Shown in pieces: positions 21,544-45,800 of a DNA stretch of 64,000 nucleotides. The translations under genes and the position numbers were made by a program. The stretch comes from Oculina patagonica. Taxonomy: Eukaryota. The stretch spans positions 34,906,001-34,970,000 of the forward strand of contig NC_135759.1 in the NCBI RefSeq assembly GCF_052425735.1. The letters are read 5' to 3'. How positions within the stretch are numbered: the first letter of the stretch is position 1; the number at the start of each line of letters is the position of its first letter. The notes below the pieces were generated by a model that worked only from the letters and a program-made list of their open reading frames with translations, made no database searches and was not told the DNA's origin.

Positions 21544-23106
21544 TTACATCTTTGTTTCATTGTTGGTTTCATCAACATTTGTTCTATTCATTTTTCTGAT
21601 GTCCTCATTTTCTGACTCTCTTCTTAAGTAGTTTCCTAAATCTAATCCCTCTAGCATTTCATTATTAGGAATTCTACAGGTGACTGGAGGACTAATCAAG
21701 TTTAGACTTGCTTGTAATAGATAAAGAACAACAATTCCTGCAAAATGACCAACCAAGGCACTGGCTGTGGGCTGATCTGAAAGCAAAGTAAAAACAGAAA
21801 ATATGAGAATCCCATCCTCCCGATAACAAATCTACAATAAAATAAAATAAAAAAATACTTATCATTTAAAACTCTGCTGAGAAGGAAAACCAATCGCATG
21901 TAAGATGACGCTTTTGATAACTATCATCTGATTGGCTACAGCACAATTAAAATGTCTAAGGCAAATCAAAGTGCTTGCGCTTTTCAGACTCAAACAGTAA
22001 CAGTACGTGGATACTTCTTTGAGCCCTGGGGCCCGTTTCTCGAAAGTCCCGAAAAGTTTTCGCACCCGGAAAGCCATAGCAAAATCTCAAACCACAGCGG
22101 TTCCCATCATACAAAGTTCCAGGCCTAGACACTTCTTTGTTTTAAAGATACAGCTATCTAAAAATGTAATTTCTGACAAACCCCTATTGAGCAGCCAACT
22201 TCTGTTAGCAGCGACTCAACATGTCCCGAAGGTGACCACTTTATAGGGGTTAAAGCACTTACCTGGGAGTAGATATAGATCCATCAAGTGCCATATTCCC
22301 ACCCAAGAAGCCACCACTCCAAAACCAAGTATGTATACAAAGACTTGCTCCAGGACCCGGCTCGACAACGAATGTGGCGGATTCAGTTTTCTTGTTGATA
22401 TAAACTCACTCAACAAATAGCATATACTAAATACAGAGTATCCCAGAGTGATAAACGCAATCGATGCTGAAAGCTTGTCGTTTGGATGTTTCATTATCGT
22501 CACAATAAGAAGCCAAGTTCCTCGCCAATAGCTAATCACTGCAGCTCCGATTATGAACACCGTAACAAAACTATTTAACATTCGTGCAGAGATTTTAGCA
22601 CAGGCAGAAATCTTGTTCCTCAAACAAAGTTTTACCTGAAGAATTTTCTTCGATGGATCAATGTGTCTCTCGCAGATGCAATATCCTGGAATGGCGATGA
22701 GAGAGTATGTAGTTTTCAAAGATAAAACGATTAAGAATCCAACAGCATGTGAAACACAGGCACTTGTTAGACTAGTAGTTGTGTAAAGATCTAACATCAT
22801 CCAAAATCCTCTCCAAGATGCCACGATCAGAAAAGAAAGAGGATAAAAGAGAACAAGATACAATGTTTTTCGAATTCTCGCTTTCCTTTCATTTAAGAAT
22901 TCTTTTAAATAATCCTCCACCAACATGATCAAGAATATAGCTCCAAAACTCGCTGTGAACGTCATCGAGGCACTGAGAACTTCATCGTCTGGAAACACGA
23001 ACAAGTCTAAAATGTACCACGTTCCACGCCAATAATTCACGACTGCTGGTGTGATAAGACATAAAATGAATATCAAGTTGAGAAACGATAGCAACACGAA
23101 ATACAT
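21544..23106 (-). CDS. Fuseless-family multi-pass membrane protein, paralogue A (2 exons, about 358 aa)
   Basis: Exons 23106-22263 (donor GTAAGT) and 21776-21544. Four repeats of the WRG(T/F)W / WVGIW..MD.Y motif with hydrophobic helices (TPAVVNYWRGTWYILDLFVFP), as in Drosophila Fuseless. The start ATG was chosen by alignment to the paralogue. Confidence 0.85.
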
Positions 23107-25877
23107 CTTCCTTCGCCCAGGCGGCTTTTGTTCGTGACAGAAGTTACAGAGGTCGACAGAGGTCAAGGTTGTTGGCAGAGCCCACGGTCCTTTCGGTCAG
23201 CTTCAGTGTAACATTACAAGGTAGGTACTTCATATATGGTAATTCAAAACAAAATCCTCTGCATCTTACTACAAAAAGATTACCAAGTTTTTTTTTGTTT
23301 GTGTTTTTTTTTTTTTTTTTTATAATTTTTTTTTTTTTTTTTTTTAAAAAATTTAAGGGTTTGATCCCTTTTTGCTACAAATCCCGAAGTGCAACATCTG
23401 TGATGGCCTTCATTATCTGTGACGGGTTCTGTGACGCCGGCTGAGCCTAATCCGGAAATTTACTTACTTACCTTAACATTTGTGTGTGAGCAGCTGGATG
23501 TTTGAGACGAGAGTAACTAAATAATCGATGACGGTAATGGTCCTTATGACATGTTATGACGTTGACAACGGTGATCACGAGACGTACTCGTGACGGGAAA
23601 GAGTGACATGACATGTTCGTGTCAACTGTCACGACACGCTTGACTGTCACGCCAATCTTTTACTTAGCGTTAGTGATGCAGTGATCATTCATTTTTTGTA
23701 GTTTTTCGATTGGAATATAAAAGGTTCCAGAAACTTTGCTCCTAATTTCAAAGTTCAATAAATTCGAAATTGTTTATGGAGGAAAAGATGTACTTACGAT
23801 GAAGGCAATGAAGACCGCATTACTGTCATTTCTCCTAGCTTAAAAATCGATAAAAACTTGAACTACGAATTCATTCATCGTGTCATGATTCCTGGAACTT
23901 GGTTATAGCTTGCTAGAAATTATCGAAAATTAACCTTTTCCCCATTTTAACCCAATTTGATAATCCTTGCTCAACTGCCCCGAGAGCTTCAAAACGTTCG
24001 AAACTCAGGTTTTCGTGCAGAAAACTTTAAAAAAATGGTTTACAGAAATCAAAACGAAAGTGATAAACAAAATTAAAGTAAAAACTTATGTTGAAAAGCG
24101 AGACGATCTGGGTAGGGTTTAGCCCAAGCGTTTCGCGAGAGATGTGGATAGCGTTTTTATACTGTTGTAGTTTTGGTATGGTTTGAAGAAGAAGAAAAAC
24201 AGATAAACATGATTATTCTTTTCACCCCTTTATTTACTCTCATCCTTCTCAAGCTCTATAGTGTAATGCTCCCCATGTAATTCGTCAATGAAAACGCGAT
24301 GGAATAGTATGGCCGCGCGAAGGATCTGGTAGCAATCATCATCATCATCATACTTATTTTTGGGGAAACCGGCGCAATGAAGATAACCCTATGTGAAGCT
24401 CTCAACCCGTATATATTTGTTTCAGACCACCACACCTTTGAACTCTCCGATAAGTGTGTGGGTCCTACTCAACGTAATTTACACCAAACGCTCAAGATGC
24501 GCAGATTACGGGGTCTACGTTGTTTATCTGGAACTATCATGAACATCGCTTGTATTACGTATTTGCAGTAGTCTTCCTGCAGACTTCTTGGCGCCACGTA
24601 AAAACCTCAAATTAATTAAATTAGATTTTGAGACTTTCACAGGGCTTTCGTAATTAGGTATGCAAAAACTTGCACCGGGATTTTCGGCGTGAACACCTGA
24701 ACAAGGAAACAATATCCTAGCTGTACTGCGTACCTCGAAATATGTGATGATTGTCTAGTTTTGAGAATCGCTTCGTGCAGTCTAAACCGTAACTTCATTA
24801 AATTACACAAATGTCATCGATGCTGCCGAAAACAATCAAAAAACAAAAGTTTCATGTTATCGCATTTTCAAGAAAGACTAAAAGTTTTTGCTACAAACGA
24901 ACAAAAGTGCGTGTTACGTTTGCAAAGTTAGCGTAAGGAACACCTGGGAAAGAATCCAAGTAGCCTGGAACAGTTTCTAACGAAAGAAAATATCGCTTAA
25001 ATATATACTAATTTCCCTTTGAAGCGTCAGACTTTCTAAGCAGTTTTATATTGCAATTTTCACTTAGCAAATATCGAAGATATCTAAATATTTAGTTTTG
25101 GAATGGGAAGAAATTTGTTAAATAACAAGGATGACATGAGAAGAATTTTGACACCTATATTTACGGTCATCCTTCTCAACTCTAAAGTTTGCTCCCCGAG
25201 TTTTGTAATGTTTAAATGCGAGGGAAAATGGCCGGAAGTCTGATAACGATCTTCAGTTATATCCTCGAAAATCTTCGACAAACTTCGTGAAATCTTCAAC
25301 GAAACATTCGCGAAATAAGGCCTTTGACACAACACTCGGGTAACTCTTCGGAGATCTTGGGTCCTTAAACATCCCCTGCTACCAAAATACAAGTTGCTCG
25401 AAGAGGGGACAAAGTTGCTCGAACTTATCCGAAAAGTTGAACCATGTAACAGTTGCAGATTCTTGTAAGGCAGCAATCTCCTCAATTATATTAAGACCAG
25501 AGAGTTGGTTAGGTCTTGGAGTCGAAGCCGAGATCTCCCGCACAACAGCTAGTCAGGCGCTCTACCAACTGAGCTAACCGGTCGGCGGTCAAGACGAGCG
25601 TCTCGCCCCCAGATTTTGTGCTCATGCTTTCCCTTTTTCGTTTCACACTCGACGGACTTACCGAAGCTTGGGATGTCTGTGGACAGGAAAGCAATCAGCT
25701 AATGGTCCAACTGGCAATTTTTTTCGTCATTTTATCATTTTTGTTCAGATATACAATCTAATTCGTGACTCTATCAACTGAACTCAATTGCTCAGTATTC
25801 TCAGAATTTTCACGATAGATTTCGCGGGAATATACGTACACTCGCTAAACACTCTTTAGGTTCATTAAGTTTAACAG

Positions 25878-27410
25878 TTATGGTTCCGCTTTGTTGTTTT
25901 CTTGTTTATTTGGTTCAGTTATCTTTTCCAAGTAGCTTCCCAAGTCAAACCCTTCTAGGCTTTCACTTTCATGAACTCTACAGCCTGCCGGTGAACCAAT
26001 TATATTTACACTTGCTTGTAGAAGATAAAGACAAACAATCCCTGCGAAATGGCTGACCAGTGCACTAGCCAGTGGGTGATCTGAAAAAAAAAAACAACAA
26101 CAACATCATCATCATGTATTTTACCCTCGGATTTCAGAGTAGCTTGTACAGCTAATATCTCCGAGCATTTCAACAGTACACAGCACGATGGGCAAAGACC
26201 AGACCACAACATCGGGAACTTCGTGCCCTACTCTTTACGATAAGTGTGTGGGTTCTTTTACGTCCCCTGCTGACCATATACCACTGAAGATGCAGGAGAC
26301 GGGGCCTACGGTTTATCGTCCTTATCCGAGAAGAATAGAATATCTAACCATCGGATTTGCAGATGTCATTGCAAAGGCAGCATATTCTCCTCGATTGAGT
26401 GTTGGGACTCGAACCCGAGACCTCCCGCACGATAGTCCGGCGCTCTACCAACTGAGCTAACCGGTGGGCGGTAAAAACAGACACAAACAGGCGGACAAAA
26501 ACAGGCTGAGCTATTCTGCTTGTATTTTGATACGGATTGCTCTAAAAACTGCATTAAAACTACAGTACTGACCTGGAAGTACATAAAGATCCATCAAGTG
26601 CCATATTCCTACCCAAGAAGCCACCACTCCAAAACCAAGGATATATACAAAGACCTGCTCCAGGGCCCGGTTCAACAACGAATGCGGCAGTTTTAAGGTT
26701 GATATGAATTCACCCAAACAATAGCACATAGTCACTACAGCGTAACCCAGGCTGATTAACGCAATCGATGAGAGAGGTTTGTTGGTTGGATACTTCATTT
26801 TGGTCACAATAAGGAGCCAAGTTCCTCGCCAATAGCTTATCACCGCAGCTCCGATTACGAACACCGTAACAAAACTGTTAACTATTCTCGTGGTGATATC
26901 AGCACAGGCAGTAGTCTTGCTCCTCAAACATTGCTTTCCCTTAAGAATACACTTCGATAAATCAATGTGTCTCTCGCTGATACAGTAGCCAGGACTGGCG
27001 ATGATACTGGATGCAGTTTTCGTAGTTAAAACGATCAAGAATCCAATAGCATGTGAAACACAGGCACTTGTTAGACTAGTAGTTGTGTAAAGATCTAACA
27101 TCATCCACAGACCTCTCCAAGATATTACGGTCATCAACGCCAGAGGATAAAAGAGAACAAGATACAATGCTTTTCTTGCTTTCCTTTCATTTAAAAATTC
27201 TTTTAAATAATCCTCCACCAACATGATCAAGAATATCGTTCCAAAACTCGCTGTGAACGTCATCGAGGCACTGAGAACTTCATCGTCTGGAAACACGAAC
27301 AAGTCTAAAATGTACCACGTTCCACGCCAATAATTCACTACTGCTGGTGTGATAAGAAATAAAATGAGGATCAAGTTGAGAAGCCGTTTCCAAAATAACA
27401 AGAAAGACAT
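25878..27410 (-). CDS. Fuseless-family multi-pass membrane protein, paralogue B (2 exons, about 346 aa)
   Basis: Exons 27410-26573 (donor GTCAGT) and 26080-25878 (DHPLASALVSHFAGIVCLYLLQAS...KAEP*). Same intron position and phase as paralogue A. Confidence 0.85.
26100..26470 (-). mobile_element. tRNA-derived SINE filling most of the paralogue B intron
   Basis: Minus-strand head CCGGTTAGCTCAGTTGGTAGAGCG...GGTTCGAGTCCC and (GAT)n-type tail; related pieces at about 25510-25590 and 24340-24560. Confidence 0.75.
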
Positions 27411-31489: not shown

Positions 31490-32537
31490 GATATTCGAGA
31501 ATCAGGAGTTCGAGTTAACAGCGACATAAAAAAAACGGAAAGCTGGTAAGGTTTAAGTTAGGCTAGCAATGATTTAGTCTCCTCCGCAGCCGATATTTGG
31601 GTCATCAAGCAATGCTTCTCTCACCGTGATTCGACGCTAACGGCTCAGTGCTTAAACCCGAGTCACATTCCTTTCATTTTGTTTTGACCCCAGTAGCTTT
31701 GACAGCTATCAGCAAAAAGGTGACAGTTGCTATTTGCCGAAAATCTGTTTTATTGCTTCACATTTTGAGCTTATGTTCCTGTTGTTCTTTTTAAAAAGGT
31801 TTCGTATCGGACGTGTGCTGGGGAAGGAAGCGTTGTGTGACGAGCCTAAACAACGGCTGTGAGGGAAACTAGCGATTATCAGGTCATCCACTTATTATCA
31901 TTACTGCTGAAATAAATAGATTTCTTATAACGTATTGAAGTAACTGTTTTTACCTACCTACTAATGTTGACTCAGCCCTATCAGTCGTCTAATGACCGCC
32001 AAATGTTTTCCATCGAAAGATTCTCGTGCAATCCGCGCAAAGTTGACGCAATCGGCAAGTCTGCATGCTACTGAGTCTAAGACAATGACAACCAGACAGA
32101 CAGCGGCGGCCAAGTCAAGTGGTACGTTTCAGTAACGCAACTTCACTTGTCGCCCCAAGAGAGTCTTGGATTCCGGATTCCGCATCGTGGATTCCGGATT
32201 CCAGTGACTGGATTCCGGATTCAATGTCTGAGGATTCCGAATTCCAAAAGGTGCGAGATTACGGATTCCACACCTTTTAAATCTGTTTTTTAGTGGTACC
32301 TCAACAGCAGATTACGCTATTTTTATAGCATATTCAGCTGTTAAGATGCGATGTCGTCTATTTTCTTCCTTTTTTTTAGTATATTAAATTTAAATATACG
32401 TAAAAATGTAGAGCGTAAAGCGAGAAAAAAATTCAATTCAATTACAATATTGATTACTTCGAAATTACGCACGTATTTCTATAGAACAAAGAACAGCCGG
32501 ACTTACATTTATAATTCCATGCAAAAAGCTTAATCCC

Positions 32538-32639
32538 TAGCCTGTGTACAGCCGTCCCGCTCCACTAAAAAAAAAATCGGGAGGGAACCGTTCCCACCCC
32601 GATTTTTTGAGGGGGAGCGGGACGGCTGTACACAGGCTA
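32538..32639. mobile_element. 102-bp hairpin mini-element with 9-bp TSD
   Basis: TAGCCTGTGTACAGCCGTCCCGCTCC...GGAGCGGGACGGCTGTACACAGGCTA; TSD CTTAATCCC. Confidence 0.9.
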
Positions 32640-33084
32640 CTTAATCCCGTAAATACTGTTTCACAGTTCGATACGCTAACTTAGCTCGCAGTCCCGCGCA
32701 TCAAGAATTTGAGTGAAGAAGCGTGGGGCATGCTCTCAGATACCGGAAAATGCATTTAAAATTAGAAGAAAATAAACGTTCAGCGCTTAAAATATTGCTG
32801 TAAAAATGATATATTGCTTAAAGAGGAGATGAATCGGGGTACGCAAATCCGCCGATCCGTGCCGTCAATTCGCCACTGTTCTCGTTCAAGTCCAAATCCG
32901 CATTACATGAAAACTTTGTGTGGTATAGATTCGCTGCAACGGAAAGTAGATGTTGCTTCTTATGCCAACTGTTTCAGAAGGTTCGTTTCACTGCCAGCAC
33001 TTGTCAGTTGCGACAATTACGCCAACATACCGACGAAAACCGACCAAAGTGATTCGGACTTCGTTAAATATCTGTTGCAGGTCA

Positions 33085-33510
33085 AATTGGTTTTCAGGTT
33101 AAATCTGTTTTTAGTCGATTTCAACCAAGGCATTAAAATCTGTTTAATCGCTACTCTGAGTTTCATGCCTCATGCGAGGCAATCATCAGGGGACTGCCAG
33201 AAAAAACGGTTACATTGAAAGAAATTTGAAAATACAGAACAATACAATACATTGTGTGTCACATGTCACGTCACGCGGGAACTTTATCACTAGTTACATG
33301 ATAAAGTTTTCCAGCAAGAATTTCCTAGCATGTCTGCAACACGATACGGGCTCGTTTCCGGTTTACATAAAATGAAACATTTCTCCCACAAACACAAATT
33401 ACATCTCTTGGTAATATTCGAATAAGACCTAGGCTGTTTAACTTTGCACCACTTGATGTCATGCTTAGTGTTCTGATCTTTCAAACTCCATATATACTTG
33501 CAAAAAAACA
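33085..33510 (-). mobile_element. Penelope-like retroelement 3' fragment (end of GIY-YIG ORF plus terminal repeat region)
   Basis: [17 protein letters not shown]...[23 protein letters not shown], then frameshifted [18 protein letters not shown], a characteristic Penelope-like C-terminus; followed by a hammerhead motif. Confidence 0.8.
33146..33195 (-). ncRNA. Type I minimal hammerhead ribozyme (Penelope-associated)
   Basis: Minus strand reads AGUCCC-CUGAUGA-U-UGCCUC-GCAU-GAGGCA-U-GAAA-CUC-A-GAG-UA-GCGAUU: intact CUGAUGA and GAAA boxes, 6-bp stem II, short stem III, GUA cleavage triplet, and stem I with one mismatch. Confidence 0.75.
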
Positions 33511-33834
33511 AATTTGAAAACTAACTTTGGGACTTAAACTGATCTTACCTGATTTTTCTCCGGCAATGATACAGCGTACTATCTTGAGGACGGTTATTTA
33601 ATTCAAGTGATGATGGGGAATATGCTTAAATGTGATGTTTCTAATACTTTGTTATGACATCTAGAATAAGGTTATTGGTTGCCTAAGGGGATCGGGTAGA
33701 CCCTGTCCCAAGGTCTCACATGAATGGCTCGTTCCTTTCGAGAGAACAATGCCCCTTGTCCAAGAAATTAACAACATGAACTCTTACCTACAGTAGAGGA
33801 CCAGTAGAATAAAGCATTCCGGAATCATGTAAAC

Positions 33835-34356
33835 CACAGGTAGCCCAAGCTCGATATATGAGTACAATAAAGATGACCTTTTCATTGTTTCGTAATTCGA
33901 TCGATTTGCATATTTATAAGGATTTGTATGGGGAAATAAATTTGACCGAAAAGAACGAAAAATTAACCGTTGAATTACAATAAAAATCAGTCACCTTAGC
34001 TCCTTTGCTGTTTCCCTTGTGTGCTGTGTGGTTTTTTAGCCGATTGAGCGCGATTCCAGTGAGTTATAGTTCCATTGCCTTCCTCTCTCTATATACCTTA
34101 GAGAGAGGAAGGCAATGGAACTATAACTCACTGGAATCGCGCTCAATCGGCTAAAAAACCACACAGCACACAAGGGAAACAGCAAAGGAGCTAAGGTGAC
34201 TGATTTTTATTGTAATTCAACGGTTAATTTTTCGTTCTTTTCGGTCAAATTTATTTCCCCATACAAATCCTTATAAATATGCAAATCGATCGAATTACGA
34301 AACAATGAAAAGGTCATCTTTATTGTACTCATATATCGAGCTTGAGGCTACCTGTG
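33835..34356. mobile_element. 522-bp foldback element: about 257-bp near-perfect inverted arms, 7-nt spacer, 7-bp TSD
   Basis: Arms 33835-34091 and 34099-34356 are reverse complements except for one 1-nt indel near the outer end. Spacer TATACCT; termini CACAGG...CCTGTG; TGTAAAC directly on both sides (33828-33834 and 34357-34363). Confidence 0.9.
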
Positions 34357-35336
34357 TGTAAACAGGCCTATAGACTCCTTTCAATTCTGTGCGTTTTCTG
34401 TTGCTTTTAAGAAAGAAAATTACACTAAAAGACATTATTTTTTGTATTCATATTGCCAAGTTTAAAAATTCATTTAGTTTTCGACCATGACAACGGCGGT
34501 TGTCTTACAAGAATTCAAAATTAACGTGGCCGCTTGATCATAAATTTTATGTATATATCATATAGTTTATAAAATAGAAATAGATGAATGTTTCCTTTCT
34601 CTTCTCTTCTTTTTATATGTCAGTGTTATCATTTTAAGATTCTGGCAACGCGAGACATGTTTGATTATAATACCGGGCATTCTTTTAACTCTTGAGCGAA
34701 CAAATTACACGAGTATAAAAGCAATTGTGATTCCCAGATTAGAGACCTCCTGAAGAAAATAACAACCCAACCTGGCTTTAAAAGAAGCGAGCAACAGACT
34801 GACGTAGCTTTACTTTCGCATCTGTGTATGTGGCGTCTGAAGGAGAGCGTTCAAAATTTCACTCCCGAAGTTTCCAGTATCAATTAATAGCAACTGTGAA
34901 GAACACTACTGCCAAATTCTAATTCGATTGGGAAAACACGGCCCCACAAGCTTCTCTGAGCTTTAAAAAGACAACCGTGTTTAAGTAAAGGTAAGGTAAG
35001 GTGATGTTAGAAAAAATGTCTCTTACACTATCAACGATCTAGAGTAAAACTGGAAATGATGAAAGCTGATTTAATTGAAAACAACGACACCTAATAAATT
35101 GCACATCGGTTTTGCCCCAGAAATTAACAAAAGGAACTCCTACATACACTAGAGGACAAGTAGAATAAAGCATCCGAGATCGGGATGCAACACCACGTTT
35201 CATTGCTTGTTTTTTTTTTCGACAATTCGCCAACATATCGCCGAAGACCGACAAGAGTGATTCGAACTTCGTTTATCCATGATCCGACCTTCCCGAAATA
35301 AAGAGATCGGAATCTGGGCAAAAACTGTCAGCTTAT

Positions 35337-35746
35337 CAGGGGCACCCAACGAGAAAATTTTACTATAGGTTTCAGAACACCGTTTTTACGTTATAAGTGT
35401 CCTTTTTGTGCGGTTTAAAGCCTTATCTTTAAACGCTAAGAAAAGTGTATCTTTTCGGATACGCTAGCTGGATTTTCAAACTTCAGAAAGTTTTAGGAAC
35501 GAAATATTATTACCCGAATTTACGAGCCGCTGTTGCCTTCTCGAAAATCGTAGCTGGCCTTTTTTCGTACCCAAAACGACATTTTTCTCTCTCAGAAAAC
35601 AACAGGCATTACTTTCCCCATGTCACGAATGTTTGAGCTAAAGAGAACTCCAGTTTTCTCATCACACTTTAATCCGAAAATCGTAGGCCATTAATTATAA
35701 GTCTTCCGAACAGATATTCACCGAAACGGTCTGTTGGGTGCCCCTG
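35337..35746. mobile_element. 410-bp MITE with 6-bp TSD nested in the composite element
   Basis: CAGGGGCACCCAAC...GTTGGGTGCCCCTG; TSD GCTTAT (35331-35336 and 35747-35752). Confidence 0.9.
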
Positions 35747-37473
35747 GCTTATCCGCGATCTGCTGTACTTTCGAGATCCGCGAATCCGCTTGATGTATCG
35801 CAAAAAATCCACAATCCACTCTAAGTTAGAAATATACATTTGTTTTAGTGTTTTCTAATGCATCCTCGACCGGAGAGCCTGTTCACAGGCTAATGCTTCC
35901 CCATCTCGAATTCCGTACGTATTTCAATCTCCTCAAACGACAAGAAGAACCAGCTCGAACTGAGAATTTCTTGATCGCCGAATCGAAAGGGCGCCTGGGA
36001 GTCGTGTTTCTTCCACAGGGGAACTTCCTGGACAAAAATTCTCAGTGGTTTAACTTCGCCAGATTTCACCGTCAATCAAACTTACCTTTTACCGCTTTCA
36101 CTATTACCGAATTTGTGGAAAATGTACAGGGATTTTCATCTGTGTCACAAGAATGGCGAGCTCCGCATGGAACCGAAAAGGATAAACACCTCCTGTGAGC
36201 ATTGTTGACAGTTGAGAGACATTGCGTTACTCTTGGTATAAATTTCAATTTTTAAAGGTCAAAACGCAGTATGATAAAATGGTATTTTTTAACAAATAAT
36301 GCATGCGCCCTACCAGGATGATCAAAGACCACAACACCGCCGTGTTGATTTAGAACTTGATTTGAATTTACTAACCAAATATCAAAAATTTACGTTCGCT
36401 TTCTGGTTTTACTTTCTTCCTTCCCATCATCCTTCGCGTCTTGCAATTTTCGCATAAGAGACGACTGGGGACGAGTCAGGTTTTTGTAGTGCTCTGATGG
36501 TAGATTCCGGATTCCACATGAGGCTGGATTCTGGATTCCACAGGCGGGATTCCGGATTCCAAAGGCCTGGATTCCGGATTCCAAGAGCAAAAATATGTTG
36601 GATTCCGGATTCCGGATTCCCTCACATGGGGCGACACTTGCGTGTAGCATGCAGCAATGATGTTTACCAAATGTTTTTTTTTTAATGATTTTTAGGATTT
36701 TTAGATTTGTCAAAAATTAACGTAAATAAGAGAAGCTAAAAACTCGTGTTTAAATGATTGTTATTCAACAGCGAAGTGTTTGGTAAAAAAAAAGTTGCAG
36801 ACAGTATGGGAGCAGTAAAGTGGTGGGGCTGAGCGTGACGTCAGTGATCGACTGATCAAATAGAACCGAATACAACCGGAGAATAACTACAGGAATAAAT
36901 GTCTAAAATTTTTCGTGAACAGAAATCAAGTTCAACTCAACAAGAAATCGCCGCATAGATTACACAAAGCAAAATACTCTCCAGGCAGTTAGAAAGGACT
37001 AATTGACTGTTTTTGCATAAGCATAAACTGGAGTTAATGTTTACTCAATTGAAATTTACACTCCCCGTGGATGTGTTTTTCCGGCAATCTGTACTCCGCT
37101 CTTTCTTTAAACCGTAAACACGTACTTGTATCCCCCTCTATTTATACTGGCCAATGAAAGATAAGCTTGCACGCGTTCACAAATTGCCCGCCAATCAGAT
37201 CCGCACAGTCTTCCCCTGTCACACTCGAGATCGCAGTCGATCTTCACTTGCAATTCAGTTATTAAGCTACTGGACTCAAGCGTTTATTTCCCCACCCACC
37301 CTCCGCGTTTATCTCATAGCTCTACTGTTGCCACTCTCAGACAAAGCATTTCTTGTAGGCTACTAGTTTACATCTGCTCCATTTGTGATGTTATATCCGA
37401 TACATTTATAGTTAAAAAAGCGATTTTTGTAATACCATCAGAGTTTAGTCGTTGTTGTTCTTTAATAAACGGT

Positions 37474-42800: not shown

Positions 42801-45800
42801 TTTAAGTTAGGCTAAAAATTCCACAAGGGGAAGTTACATAACCTTTTACTGGTAGCAGCCTTCATAGCCTGCGTAGTTTTGGGCACGTATTTTGCAAACT
42901 CGCGACTTTCACGTTTTCCAAACGCGCGCTCAAAAACTATACAGGCGCTTGCTATGCAGGCTATAGCCTCAAAGAGGCGCATCGTCAAAACTCTCCTCCA
43001 AACGTGGACATGGGAGGAAAGATTGTGTGGTAAACCAAAGAAATGTTCGTTGGTGGTGCAGGAGGCTAATGATTGATGTATCCCGTCTGTGCACAGTAAG
43101 CCCCATACATATGTACATACCAACTGGTGAAGGCTGCAGTGGCTGTTGTTGCTGTGGTGGCTGCTGGTCTCCTGCTCCAAACAGTGGAGCAGTGATAGGT
43201 GCAGGGGGCGTGAAAGCTGGGGTCTGCACGGCAAAAAAAAAAATTAAATATAAATATTAATCATCTATTCAAACAAGCTTCACGGCTTGCAAAGGACCGG
43301 CAGGAATGGAGGCGACTTGTTGATGCCCTATGCGCCACTGGGCGTTTAAAGGACTGGTGATGATGATGATGATTCAAAACAAGAACGTGAATATAACCTT
43401 AAAAGAAAATCAAGTCACTTATCATTCTCTAACGTACTCTTTATTAGCCTGCGATTGCAGATGTATTTCCGGCTGTCATTCTGTGTTCGCAGGCTAACTC
43501 TTTATGGTCAACAGGCTGATTTGCTAACAATTTGTTAGCCGTGTCTTTGTGGCGTCATACAGAGCTGGGAACTTATGATACTTGTAGGGGTACATGAACT
43601 GGGATTTGATCAAAACAAGCACGTTTTATGGCAAATATCCAAATGAACGGACAACGGCATGAGAAGAATTAAGGTTAGCTTTCAGCTGCTCACTATTTAC
43701 TTCCTACTTCACCACACAAGAAAGGCAGAAACCAAGATAAGGAGAACAGTATATTAATAAATAAATAAAACTGAATTCAATATCGTATAGAGCTGTATGA
43801 CCTGTTGTTTCTTGCCTCTCATCATATGAGTGTCTTTCCAGGCACTTGTGAGTGGAGGTGGTTCTATGAAATAAAAGGCAACATGTTATCTATAAGCTGT
43901 CGTCAAAATGTAGGAAAAGCACAAAAAGGTGAATAACAATGGCTACTATCATACCAGTAGGAGGAGGTCCTGTTGTAGGAGGGGGCGCTGCAGTCCCTGG
44001 TGGTGGAGGGCCAACTGAAGGGGCTCCAGTTGGAGATGGGCCAGAATAAGGTGCCCCAGGAGTGGCTGTGCTTCCTGGATTGAAAATCTGCACTGGAGGC
44101 TGCTGACCCTTCATCTGCATCTGGGAACCATACTGTCCAGGTGGTGGTACCTGGGTTGGTGCAGTGTTGGCAGGTTGAGGTTGGTACATTGATACTGGGG
44201 GAGGTTGAGACCATGAAGGCTGGCTAGCAGTGGGTGATGGCTGTGGTGGGGCACTGTAGTAAGGTGTTTGTGCAGGGGGTGTCTGGGCGGGGGGTCCCTG
44301 ATTAAAAGATGGCTGAGAGACAGGGGATGGCTGGGGTGCCTGTGGCTGGTAAGCAGCTGGGTTGTAGAACTGCGTTTGTGTTGAGGGCATGGATGGTTGA
44401 TATGCAGGACTAGGTGCTGGAGAGGGCTGCTGGCGTTGCTGTGGCTGGTAAAGAGTCTGCTGCTGTTGCTGTTGCTGCTGCTGTTGACGATTGGCACCAT
44501 AGCCTGGTTGCTGTTGGAACTGAACACAAAGAAACAGCTTCAAATTAATGGTCTGACTAGGCATTGCCTAACATTTGAATTAAGTTGTTTGCAAGTTTCT
44601 ACTTTGTTCCTTAGGCAATGATTGTGTTCTTCAAACCTTTATGTGACTGTTGCTAACCTGAGTTTGAGCCTGGACTTGAGGAAGAGGCTCAGCTTGAACA
44701 TCAATCCTTTGGAATGGGAATGGCGGTGGAGCAGTAGCAGATGCAAGATGGCTTGGAAATTGTGCAGTATACAGGCGATCCTTGAGAACACCAAGACTTG
44801 CCTGCAACAACAAAGACTTCAGTTTGTTTTCTTTCCATTAAAGAAAATAAGTAGTATAAAAGTTTATATTTGTTAAATTTAAGTGGTTTGGTTGTTTTTT
44901 TTTGTTTTTTTTTTTTTTTTTAAAATATTTTTTAGACAAAGGACAAAATGATCAAGGAATTTCAAAGGGCCTGATTGTACAGGTGCAACAAAACAAAATA
45001 AAGATGATCTGACCTGGTCATTGACAGCCATCAAGTATCCCATAGCAGTCTCCAGGCATCCCTGAGCTGCCAAAATCTCAGCATATTTACTGTAAAGAAG
45101 ACATCCAGTTATATCTATATAAATATCGCGTGGAACCTTCTCCCCCCTTCTCTTCCCCCCTTTTTTAAAGGAATCACATGGTAGGACATTTTACTGCACA
45201 CAAAACTATAAAATTCAGGTAGCAACCGGCGTGTCAACAGGCCCCCTATAACAAGGCTTGCTCTGTGTGCTGACATTTTTTTGCCCTGTTCCCCACTAGG
45301 GAGCCTGGTCACGGAGCAGTACCAATAGAAAAGATGTACCTACCTGAGTTTTTCAGCCAAAACAGATGAACCACTGTCAATCAGTAGTCGGCGTTCCCTC
45401 TCTACAGCCTTCTTTAGGATCATTACTTTTTCAATCAAATCCTACAAACAGAGTTAATATTTTATAGCAATAACTATATAAAAACTATAACAAAGAAGCA
45501 AGAAAAAGAGTACTTAAGGTGATTCCCTAGTATTGCATTGCGCATCCTTACTGCGCAGAATTTTACGCGTAATTAGCACGCATACATAAACAAAATGGCG
45601 GCTTTTTTCTATGCAGCTTGGCTCGCGGAGAGAGAATCATCGTTTTCTCGTAAACGAGTTCGGTGACCTATCATTTTTTCTCTTAGTTCGAGAGTAGCAA
45701 TCAAATTCTTTCTATAAAATGAATACAGATCAATTTCTATGGCAGAATAATACATTATCACCGAAAAAGGGGACTTTCAGCAGTACTCGCAAAGGAAATA

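Follow-up and report, generated by a model that had tools for sequence, protein, structure and literature searches.

Several described systems resemble parts of the locus treated here. Non-autonomous elements of the Ds/dSpm type have terminal inverted repeats (TIRs) and a target site duplication (TSD) of fixed length, and they lack a transposase. Pack-MULE and Pack-CACTA elements are TIR elements that transpose with foreign DNA between their ends. A TSD of 6 bp is typical of IS3EU/GingerRoot and Polinton, and the termini of IS3EU/GingerRoot elements are TA..TA or, rarely, TG..CA (PMC10045372). The minimal hammerhead ribozymes (min-HHRs) of Penelope elements combine a helix I of 4-5 bp with a long helix II, in which a base is unpaired, and a small palindromic helix III; they cleave poorly and have been proposed to act only as dimers, and single motifs were without detectable cleavage in vitro (PMC4209133). 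Here we compare these systems with positions 32150-36634 of a 64-kb window (the whole stretch of DNA analysed) from the genome of the stony coral Oculina patagonica, which we identify as a 4.5-kb member of a non-autonomous, low-copy family of TIR DNA transposons.

The best explanation for this element, to which we assign a probability of about 0.85, is that a non-autonomous TIR transposon acquired its cargo by ordinary nesting, was mobilised in trans and later received a private insertion of a foldback element. Element coordinates are positions in the window, and the genome searched is a 529-Mb assembly with 14 large contigs. The parts belonging to the transposon itself, with the TSDs read in the sequence and from the end alignment, are as follows.

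32144-32149, unstranded: left TSD, CACTTG
32150-32272, plus: left TIR, shortened, with five GGATTCCGGATTCC-like 14-mers arrayed subterminally
32273-32822, plus: left family-specific core, broken up by a mini-element; 70-90% identity with the old subfamily
35890-36408, plus: right family-specific core, non-coding; 71-79% identity with the old subfamily
36480-36634, plus: right subterminal array (five 14-mers) and intact TIR at 36614-36634
36635-36640, unstranded: right TSD, CACTTG

A first-pass annotation of this stretch had taken two GGATTCC arrays to be the ends of one unit with the TSD CACTTG, and this holds: the element runs from TCGCCCCA, beginning at 32150, to TGGGGCGA, ending at 36634, and the same termini bound at least ten other full copies. 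A chance match of the two CACTTG 6-mers is ruled out by the sister copies, which have the same termini together with locus-specific TSDs. Alignment of the flanks of genome matches revealed a common terminus where homology stops and a canonical family TIR of 21 bp, TCGCCCCATGTAAGGGAATCC. In the window copy the right TIR is intact (TCGCCCCATGTGAGGGAATCC read inward), while the left TIR retains its outer 8 nt and has lost the next 14 nt (TCGCCCCA^AGAGAG). The terminal ~110 nt of the family are about 72% inverted-repeat. Five 14-mers occur at each end (32168-32269 and 36502-36613), spaced by 21-24 nt, with 31 nt before the last one. That arrays occur at both ends was correctly annotated; their orientation needs correction, as the 14-mers are direct, not inverted, between the two ends, and this is true of every genomic copy. 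In a genome-wide search for the array pattern, GGATTCC arrays were confined to copies of this family. The GC content of the window is about 40%, and composition is unbroken at the element borders.

The left end has more than 20 matches in the genome with 88-99% identity, and the 21-mer TIR occurs at 46 ends genome-wide at no more than two mismatches, compared with one occurrence of a reversed control pattern; we put the size of the family at about 25 copies. Among ten other two-ended copies, the TSD is a perfect 6 bp in eight, 7 bp in one and absent in one, and all of the TSDs differ. Comparison of 14 full or partial copies by BLAST divides them into two subfamilies. The old subfamily (L055-L058, L060 and L061) has copies 2.3-2.9 kb long that share with the window copy only 32155-32537, 32640-32822 and 35890-36634, at 70-90% identity. 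The young subfamily consists of the window copy, L051-L054, L059, L063, L064 and a copy on C7, which have the whole interior in common at 93-99.6% identity. The sister copy L051 corresponds to the window copy without the foldback at 33835-34356 and without a 410-bp miniature inverted-repeat transposable element (MITE), at 98.7-99.6% identity.

Other copies sharing the interior, which had been proposed as a thing to look for, were found in L052, L053 and L054, with the same interior at 93-99% identity and TSDs that differ from each other and from that of the window copy. Because these four copies have different TSDs, the composite must have transposed repeatedly with its interior in place, and in its form without the foldback it has moved at least four times. 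All young copies with distinct TSDs contain both a second repeat, here called element Z, and a Penelope fragment. Thus the part of the earlier description that saw a unit moving with foreign sequence inside is borne out, and the part that saw host-gene fragments in the cargo is not. For annotation, the TIR, the 6-bp TSD and the direct GGATTCC arrays define a previously unclassified, low-copy family of coral DNA transposons. The cargo of the window copy, given here with the overlapping parts listed separately, comprises the following features.

32538-32639, unstranded: 102-bp palindromic mini-element with 37-nt arms; 9-bp TSD CTTAATCCC at 32529-32537 and 32640-32648
32823-35817, plus: element Z, a second repeat nested here and lacking its 3' part, delimited by genome searches with three interior pieces and by locus comparison
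33143-33499, minus: 3' end of a Penelope-like element, truncated on its 5' side and carrying ~55 terminal codons of a putative GIY-YIG open reading frame (ORF; remnant 33511-33290) and the 3' untranslated region
33148-33193, minus: minimal hammerhead-like motif, core read by eye; predicted cleavage between 33152 and 33151
33499-33834, plus: part A of a ~1.2-kb unit
33835-34356, unstranded: 522-bp foldback MITE, arms complementary at 246 of 246 nt, 7-nt loop
34357-35099, plus: part B of the ~1.2-kb unit
35100-35336, plus, resuming at 35747-35817 beyond the 410-bp MITE: distal part of Z (A')
35337-35746, unstranded: 410-bp MITE with TIR CAGGGGCACCCAAC; 6-bp TSD GCTTAT at 35331-35336 and 35747-35752
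36409-36479, plus: terminal fragment, ~70 bp long, from an unrelated TIR element that is very abundant

The roughly 2.5 kb of interior sequence that had been left unexplained belongs to element Z, a second repeat that is truncated and contains a tandem unit of ~1.2 kb, and not to captured host genes. Independent copies of Z occur at no fewer than 15 loci, with 72-91% identity. The only complete Z copy examined (L067) has short inverted termini of the GGGGGTGAAWAG type, and the assignment of Z termini from this one copy is provisional. The ~1.2-kb unit is present in two copies within L053, L054, L059 and L063. It is also tandemly arrayed, head to tail, at C3:22.11-22.13 Mb (L069, C3:22111000-22120999), where at least seven units have 85-93% identity, which ties a transposon-internal repeat to a satellite-like array.

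Two of the smaller insertions had been recognised from their TSDs, and both are confirmed by paralogous copies. The 102-bp mini-element, with its 9-bp TSD CTTAATCCC, occurs in most of the young copies examined and is deleted in L052 and L063; it is absent from the old subfamily, in which its target site is uninterrupted. A solo end resembling the mini-element TIR lies at 35868-35892, is 76% complementary to 32538-32562 and could be what is left of another insertion by the same mini-element family. The 410-bp MITE is likewise found in most young copies, and the independent Z copy L067 has a true empty site for its GCTTAT insertion. Where the window copy has this MITE, L051 (L051:3010-3040; C1 about 39128320) has the sequence GCTTAT-CTG-GCTTAT, a classic excision footprint that reveals recent cut-and-paste activity of the MITE family.

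Toward the right end, the ~70-bp fragment is common to the window copy, L051 and L052 and is absent from L053, L054 and L059. Hundreds of genomic sequences match the 69 bp at 36412-36480 with 99-100% identity (loci L035-L050). We considered whether these 69 bp make up a complete ultra-short element and rejected this, as they form the 3' terminus of an abundant TIR element of larger size. This source element is very abundant and very young, has a 3' end of the form ...GACTGGGGACGAGTCAGG and has an inverted copy upstream in L039.

The fragment at 33143-33499 is a separate module with copies of its own elsewhere in the genome. A fuller ORF of this type in L065 encodes 246 amino acids (within an open frame of 286), and a GIY-YIG pattern, IIY...YIG...R..H...E, is readable in it; Atlas neighbours of this ORF have GIY-YIG and HTH_animal domains. 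The 246 residues correspond to the C-terminal part of open frames of up to 715-733 amino acids elsewhere in the genome (for example at C10:13559678 and C1:7446628), which are consistent with Penelope-like elements encoding a reverse transcriptase plus an endonuclease. No Pfam match was obtained for the Penelope ORF, a PDB sequence search was uninformative, and in BLASTP the ORF aligned to the endonuclease ORF of another Penelope copy only over the YIG...R..H stretch (E=0.44), which is uninformative too. L065:3191-4665 (C13:30875190-30876664) contains two 5'-truncated Penelope-like copies placed head to head with their hammerhead 3' ends outward, an arrangement that mimics a TIR element, and this outward-facing layout recurs at many loci.

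The 522-bp foldback, also present as annotated, is an insertion in its own right: its 246-nt arms are fully complementary, and it is flanked by a 7-bp TSD, TGTAAAC, at 33828-33834 and 34357-34363. Clean empty sites, CATGTAAACAGG, are present in L051 and L052, and the foldback is private to the window copy, being found in none of roughly ten sister copies. Searches for its family gave 126 arm candidates, of which 40 were scored, and two-armed copies with 95-100% identity occur at no fewer than 30 loci; at many of these, both arms are 98-100% identical to the foldback in the window. The family is young and looks currently or recently active. Because near-identical foldback copies are present at many loci and the sister copies lack it, the hairpin is, on this evidence, a routine recent insertion. 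In L059 the nesting is reversed, with the GGATTCC element lying within a foldback copy. The private foldback insertion and the excision footprint of the 410-bp MITE show very recent mobility of two MITE families in this coral.

As these observations show, an ancestor of the young subfamily took up Z with its 1.2-kb tandem unit, a dead Penelope fragment with its hammerhead-like motif, the 410-bp MITE and the 102-bp mini-element. The composite was then mobilised in trans to several loci, including the window locus with its CACTTG TSD, and the foldback MITE, with its TGTAAAC TSD, landed only after that insertion. The arrays of GGATTCC 14-mers are probably transposase-binding sites, and the loss of 14 bases from the left TIR probably immobilised the window copy. 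The hairpin and the ribozyme-like motif would be neighbours by accident, with no dedicated function implied. Passive nesting had been offered earlier as an alternative, and it is the view favoured by the empty sites, the sister copies and the repeat origin of the interior. The locus is a clean, datable case of a transposable element (TE) nested in a TE nested in a TE.

Two observations weigh against this explanation. The sister copy L051 has no TSD, and neither an autonomous partner nor a longer copy with a transposase was found in this genome with the TIR pattern, the interior of the old subfamily or the array pattern, in a search that did not extend to diverged TIR matches (C5, C7, C14 and others). 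Within the C7 sister copy lies an insert of 11.8 kb, which we considered as the possible transposase region of the family and rejected, as both TIRs and a TSD of its own mark it as a separate insertion. This ~11.8-kb insert (L070:2645-10000, L072:1-5500; G000:C7:4884645-4896500) has TIRs beginning GAGGTTGGACACGG..., the TSD GGTTAGC and ORFs of 199-365 amino acids, and it may be an autonomous DNA transposon. A P-like element with a 6-bp TSD lies ~1 Mb upstream (L071, coordinates approximate), and no likeness of its TIRs to those of the family was seen. Membership in IS3EU/GingerRoot was also rejected: the TSD length of 6 bp agrees with that group, but the termini of the family, TC...GA, do not (PMC10045372). 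Elsewhere, three identical left family ends lie ~10 kb apart on the plus strand of C12 (27531751, 27541743 and 27551554) without right ends, as if a segment with a truncated copy in it had been duplicated in tandem; C14:9.67-9.70 Mb has a comparable series.

Among the alternatives, the one that survives best holds that the window copy is an incidental source of RNA: it would lie in an intron or in a transcribed cluster rich in TEs, and the foldback would yield small RNAs as a by-product, as any transcribed inverted repeat does, with neither a link to the hammerhead nor selection on the locus. Nested piles of TEs and perfect inverted repeats are typical sources of small RNAs, and the region of the window from 27.4 to 42.8 kb contains no long ORF other than TE debris, which suits this possibility. 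It is fully compatible with passive nesting and differs from it only in the by-product; we regard it as unlikely.

A more specific proposal, part of which stands in the first-pass annotation, is that the foldback and the ribozyme form a functional hairpin-RNA unit. In this case a minus-strand transcript would carry the ~257-bp stem, would be cut at 33152 by the hammerhead and would lack a poly(A) tail, and the resulting small interfering RNAs (siRNAs) would silence the foldback family. If the hairpin were transcribed and cut in this way, it would be a regulatory RNA born from nesting. The hairpin is perfect, a hammerhead-like core lies ~640 nt downstream of it on the same strand, and a recently active foldback family is one against which a silencing trigger would be useful. 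However, this arrangement exists in a single copy produced by a private and very recent insertion, and the same hairpin is present at no fewer than 30 other loci without the motif.

The properties of the motif also bear on this proposal. It reads CUGAUGA-U-UGCCUC-GCAU-GAGGCA-U-GAAA-CUCAGAG-UA/GCGA, with the slash at the predicted cleavage site and CUGAUGA at 33189-33183. The conserved hammerhead core (CUGANGA...GAAA...UH) and helices II and III are readable directly in it: a helix II of 6 bp, with U/U on its flanks, precedes GAAA, and helix III is palindromic (ACUCAGAGU). Ancestral copies form a 4-bp helix I from UCGC and GCGA; a change to UCCC in the window copy and its sister copies puts a C.C mismatch at positions 1.2-2.2, beside the cleavage site. 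The 42-nt motif has 63 genomic occurrences at no more than three mismatches, compared with none for a control, and these are often in outward-facing inverted pairs. Changes among intact copies of the motif mostly fall in loop II or keep pairing by G.U wobble, while core changes are few and occur in degenerate copies. Rfam hammerhead models gave no hit at E<=1 over 9 kb, and none at E<=10 over 401 nt of the window or over 121 nt from L065, whose copy is of the ancestral type. Matches to Rfam microRNA families were far under their gathering scores and were rejected as simply palindromes. Of the Penelope 3' end with a hammerhead described in the first pass, the fragment and a hammerhead-like core are thus present, and recognition by Rfam is not.

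The window motif is the only one within the 64 kb. Efficient self-cleavage of a transcript from the window locus is unlikely, because the motif is of the dimer-dependent Penelope type, has a mutation in helix I, occurs singly in 64 kb and is negative in Rfam. For a hairpin-RNA unit this is a particular difficulty, as single motifs of the min-HHR class do not cleave detectably in vitro (PMC4209133) and the C.C mismatch beside the cleavage site is lacking in the ancestral family. With the foldback a later, private insertion from a young family present at many loci, and the motif of Penelope type and mutated, the idea of a functional bundle of hairpin and ribozyme is not upheld, and we consider it very improbable.

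In a variant of this proposal, the foldback would have made the composite a hairpin-RNA gene, whose minus-strand RNA is trimmed by the Penelope hammerhead acting in a trans-dimer with other Penelope transcripts. Such a locus would produce a non-polyadenylated double-stranded RNA leading to siRNA silencing of the active foldback family, and would be a ribozyme-terminated hairpin RNA born by TE nesting; we regard this as a long shot. Nothing found points to a new RNA-processing or silencing device.

Equally hard to sustain is the view that the interior was captured from host genes, as in Pack-MULEs, and that its splice signals function, which is largely refuted by comparison with other loci: the splice-like GT/AG strings (near 36086 on the minus strand and near 34990 on the plus strand) and a 116-amino-acid ORF at 35848-36198 that recurs in some copies speak for it, but the interior segments match only other repeats, with 180 to 630 first-look candidates each, including the tandem array and a TIR-like element. 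No interior ORF exceeds 134 amino acids, and Pfam gave no match for any of seven ORFs, which came from the element and the Penelope relative. The right core, which includes the putative exon at 36192-36086, is crossed by indels of 35, 36, 4, 2 and 1 nt between the subfamilies; because many of these are not multiples of three, coding constraint on the right core is argued against. The splice-like signals, previously read as possible exons, lie in sequence with frame-breaking indels and no Pfam-detectable ORF; neither real exons nor the Pack-type classification are supported.

Upstream of the element, the window contains a local tandem duplication of a gene: two paralogous, intronless ORFs on the minus strand (22216-23166 and 26511-27410; 316 and 299 amino acids) that are multi-pass membrane-like and have repeated WRGTW motifs. 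Downstream, a 224-amino-acid ORF at 43890-44564, also on the minus strand, is extremely Q/P-rich, with a poly-Q run followed by PQ/PS repeats, and may be an exon from a protein of low complexity.

Compared with the min-HHRs of Penelope elements (Cervera and de la Pena 2014, PMC4209133), the motif shares its position at the 3' end of a retroelement, here one that would encode a GIY-YIG endonuclease, the long helix II with unpaired nucleotides at its base, the 4-bp ancestral helix I and the short palindromic helix III, which implies a dimeric active form, as well as high conservation over many genomic copies. In contrast to those ribozymes, the motif in the window is a single orphan in a 5'-truncated element, has a mismatch in helix I and is not detected by Rfam. 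The foldback resembles hairpin RNA (hpRNA) loci and foldback MITEs in that it is a nearly perfect palindrome of 522 bp, is flanked by a TSD and comes from a young, multi-copy family, and it would give a long double-stranded RNA if transcribed. Unlike a dedicated hpRNA locus, it is one of many equivalent copies.

As in Pack-MULE and Pack-CACTA elements, a TIR element has transposed with foreign DNA between its ends, whereas the cargo in the coral is made up of other transposons and a tandem repeat, with no parental gene and no conserved reading frame. Relative to internally replaced, non-autonomous TIR elements of the Ds/dSpm type, the coral family differs in that the 14-mers at its two ends point the same way and in that no autonomous partner was found in the genome. 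It nevertheless resembles them in its TIRs, fixed-length TSD, subterminal repeats, lack of a transposase and dispersed copies, and further in that an old subfamily stands beside a young one, the interior has been replaced, and other TEs are nested within.

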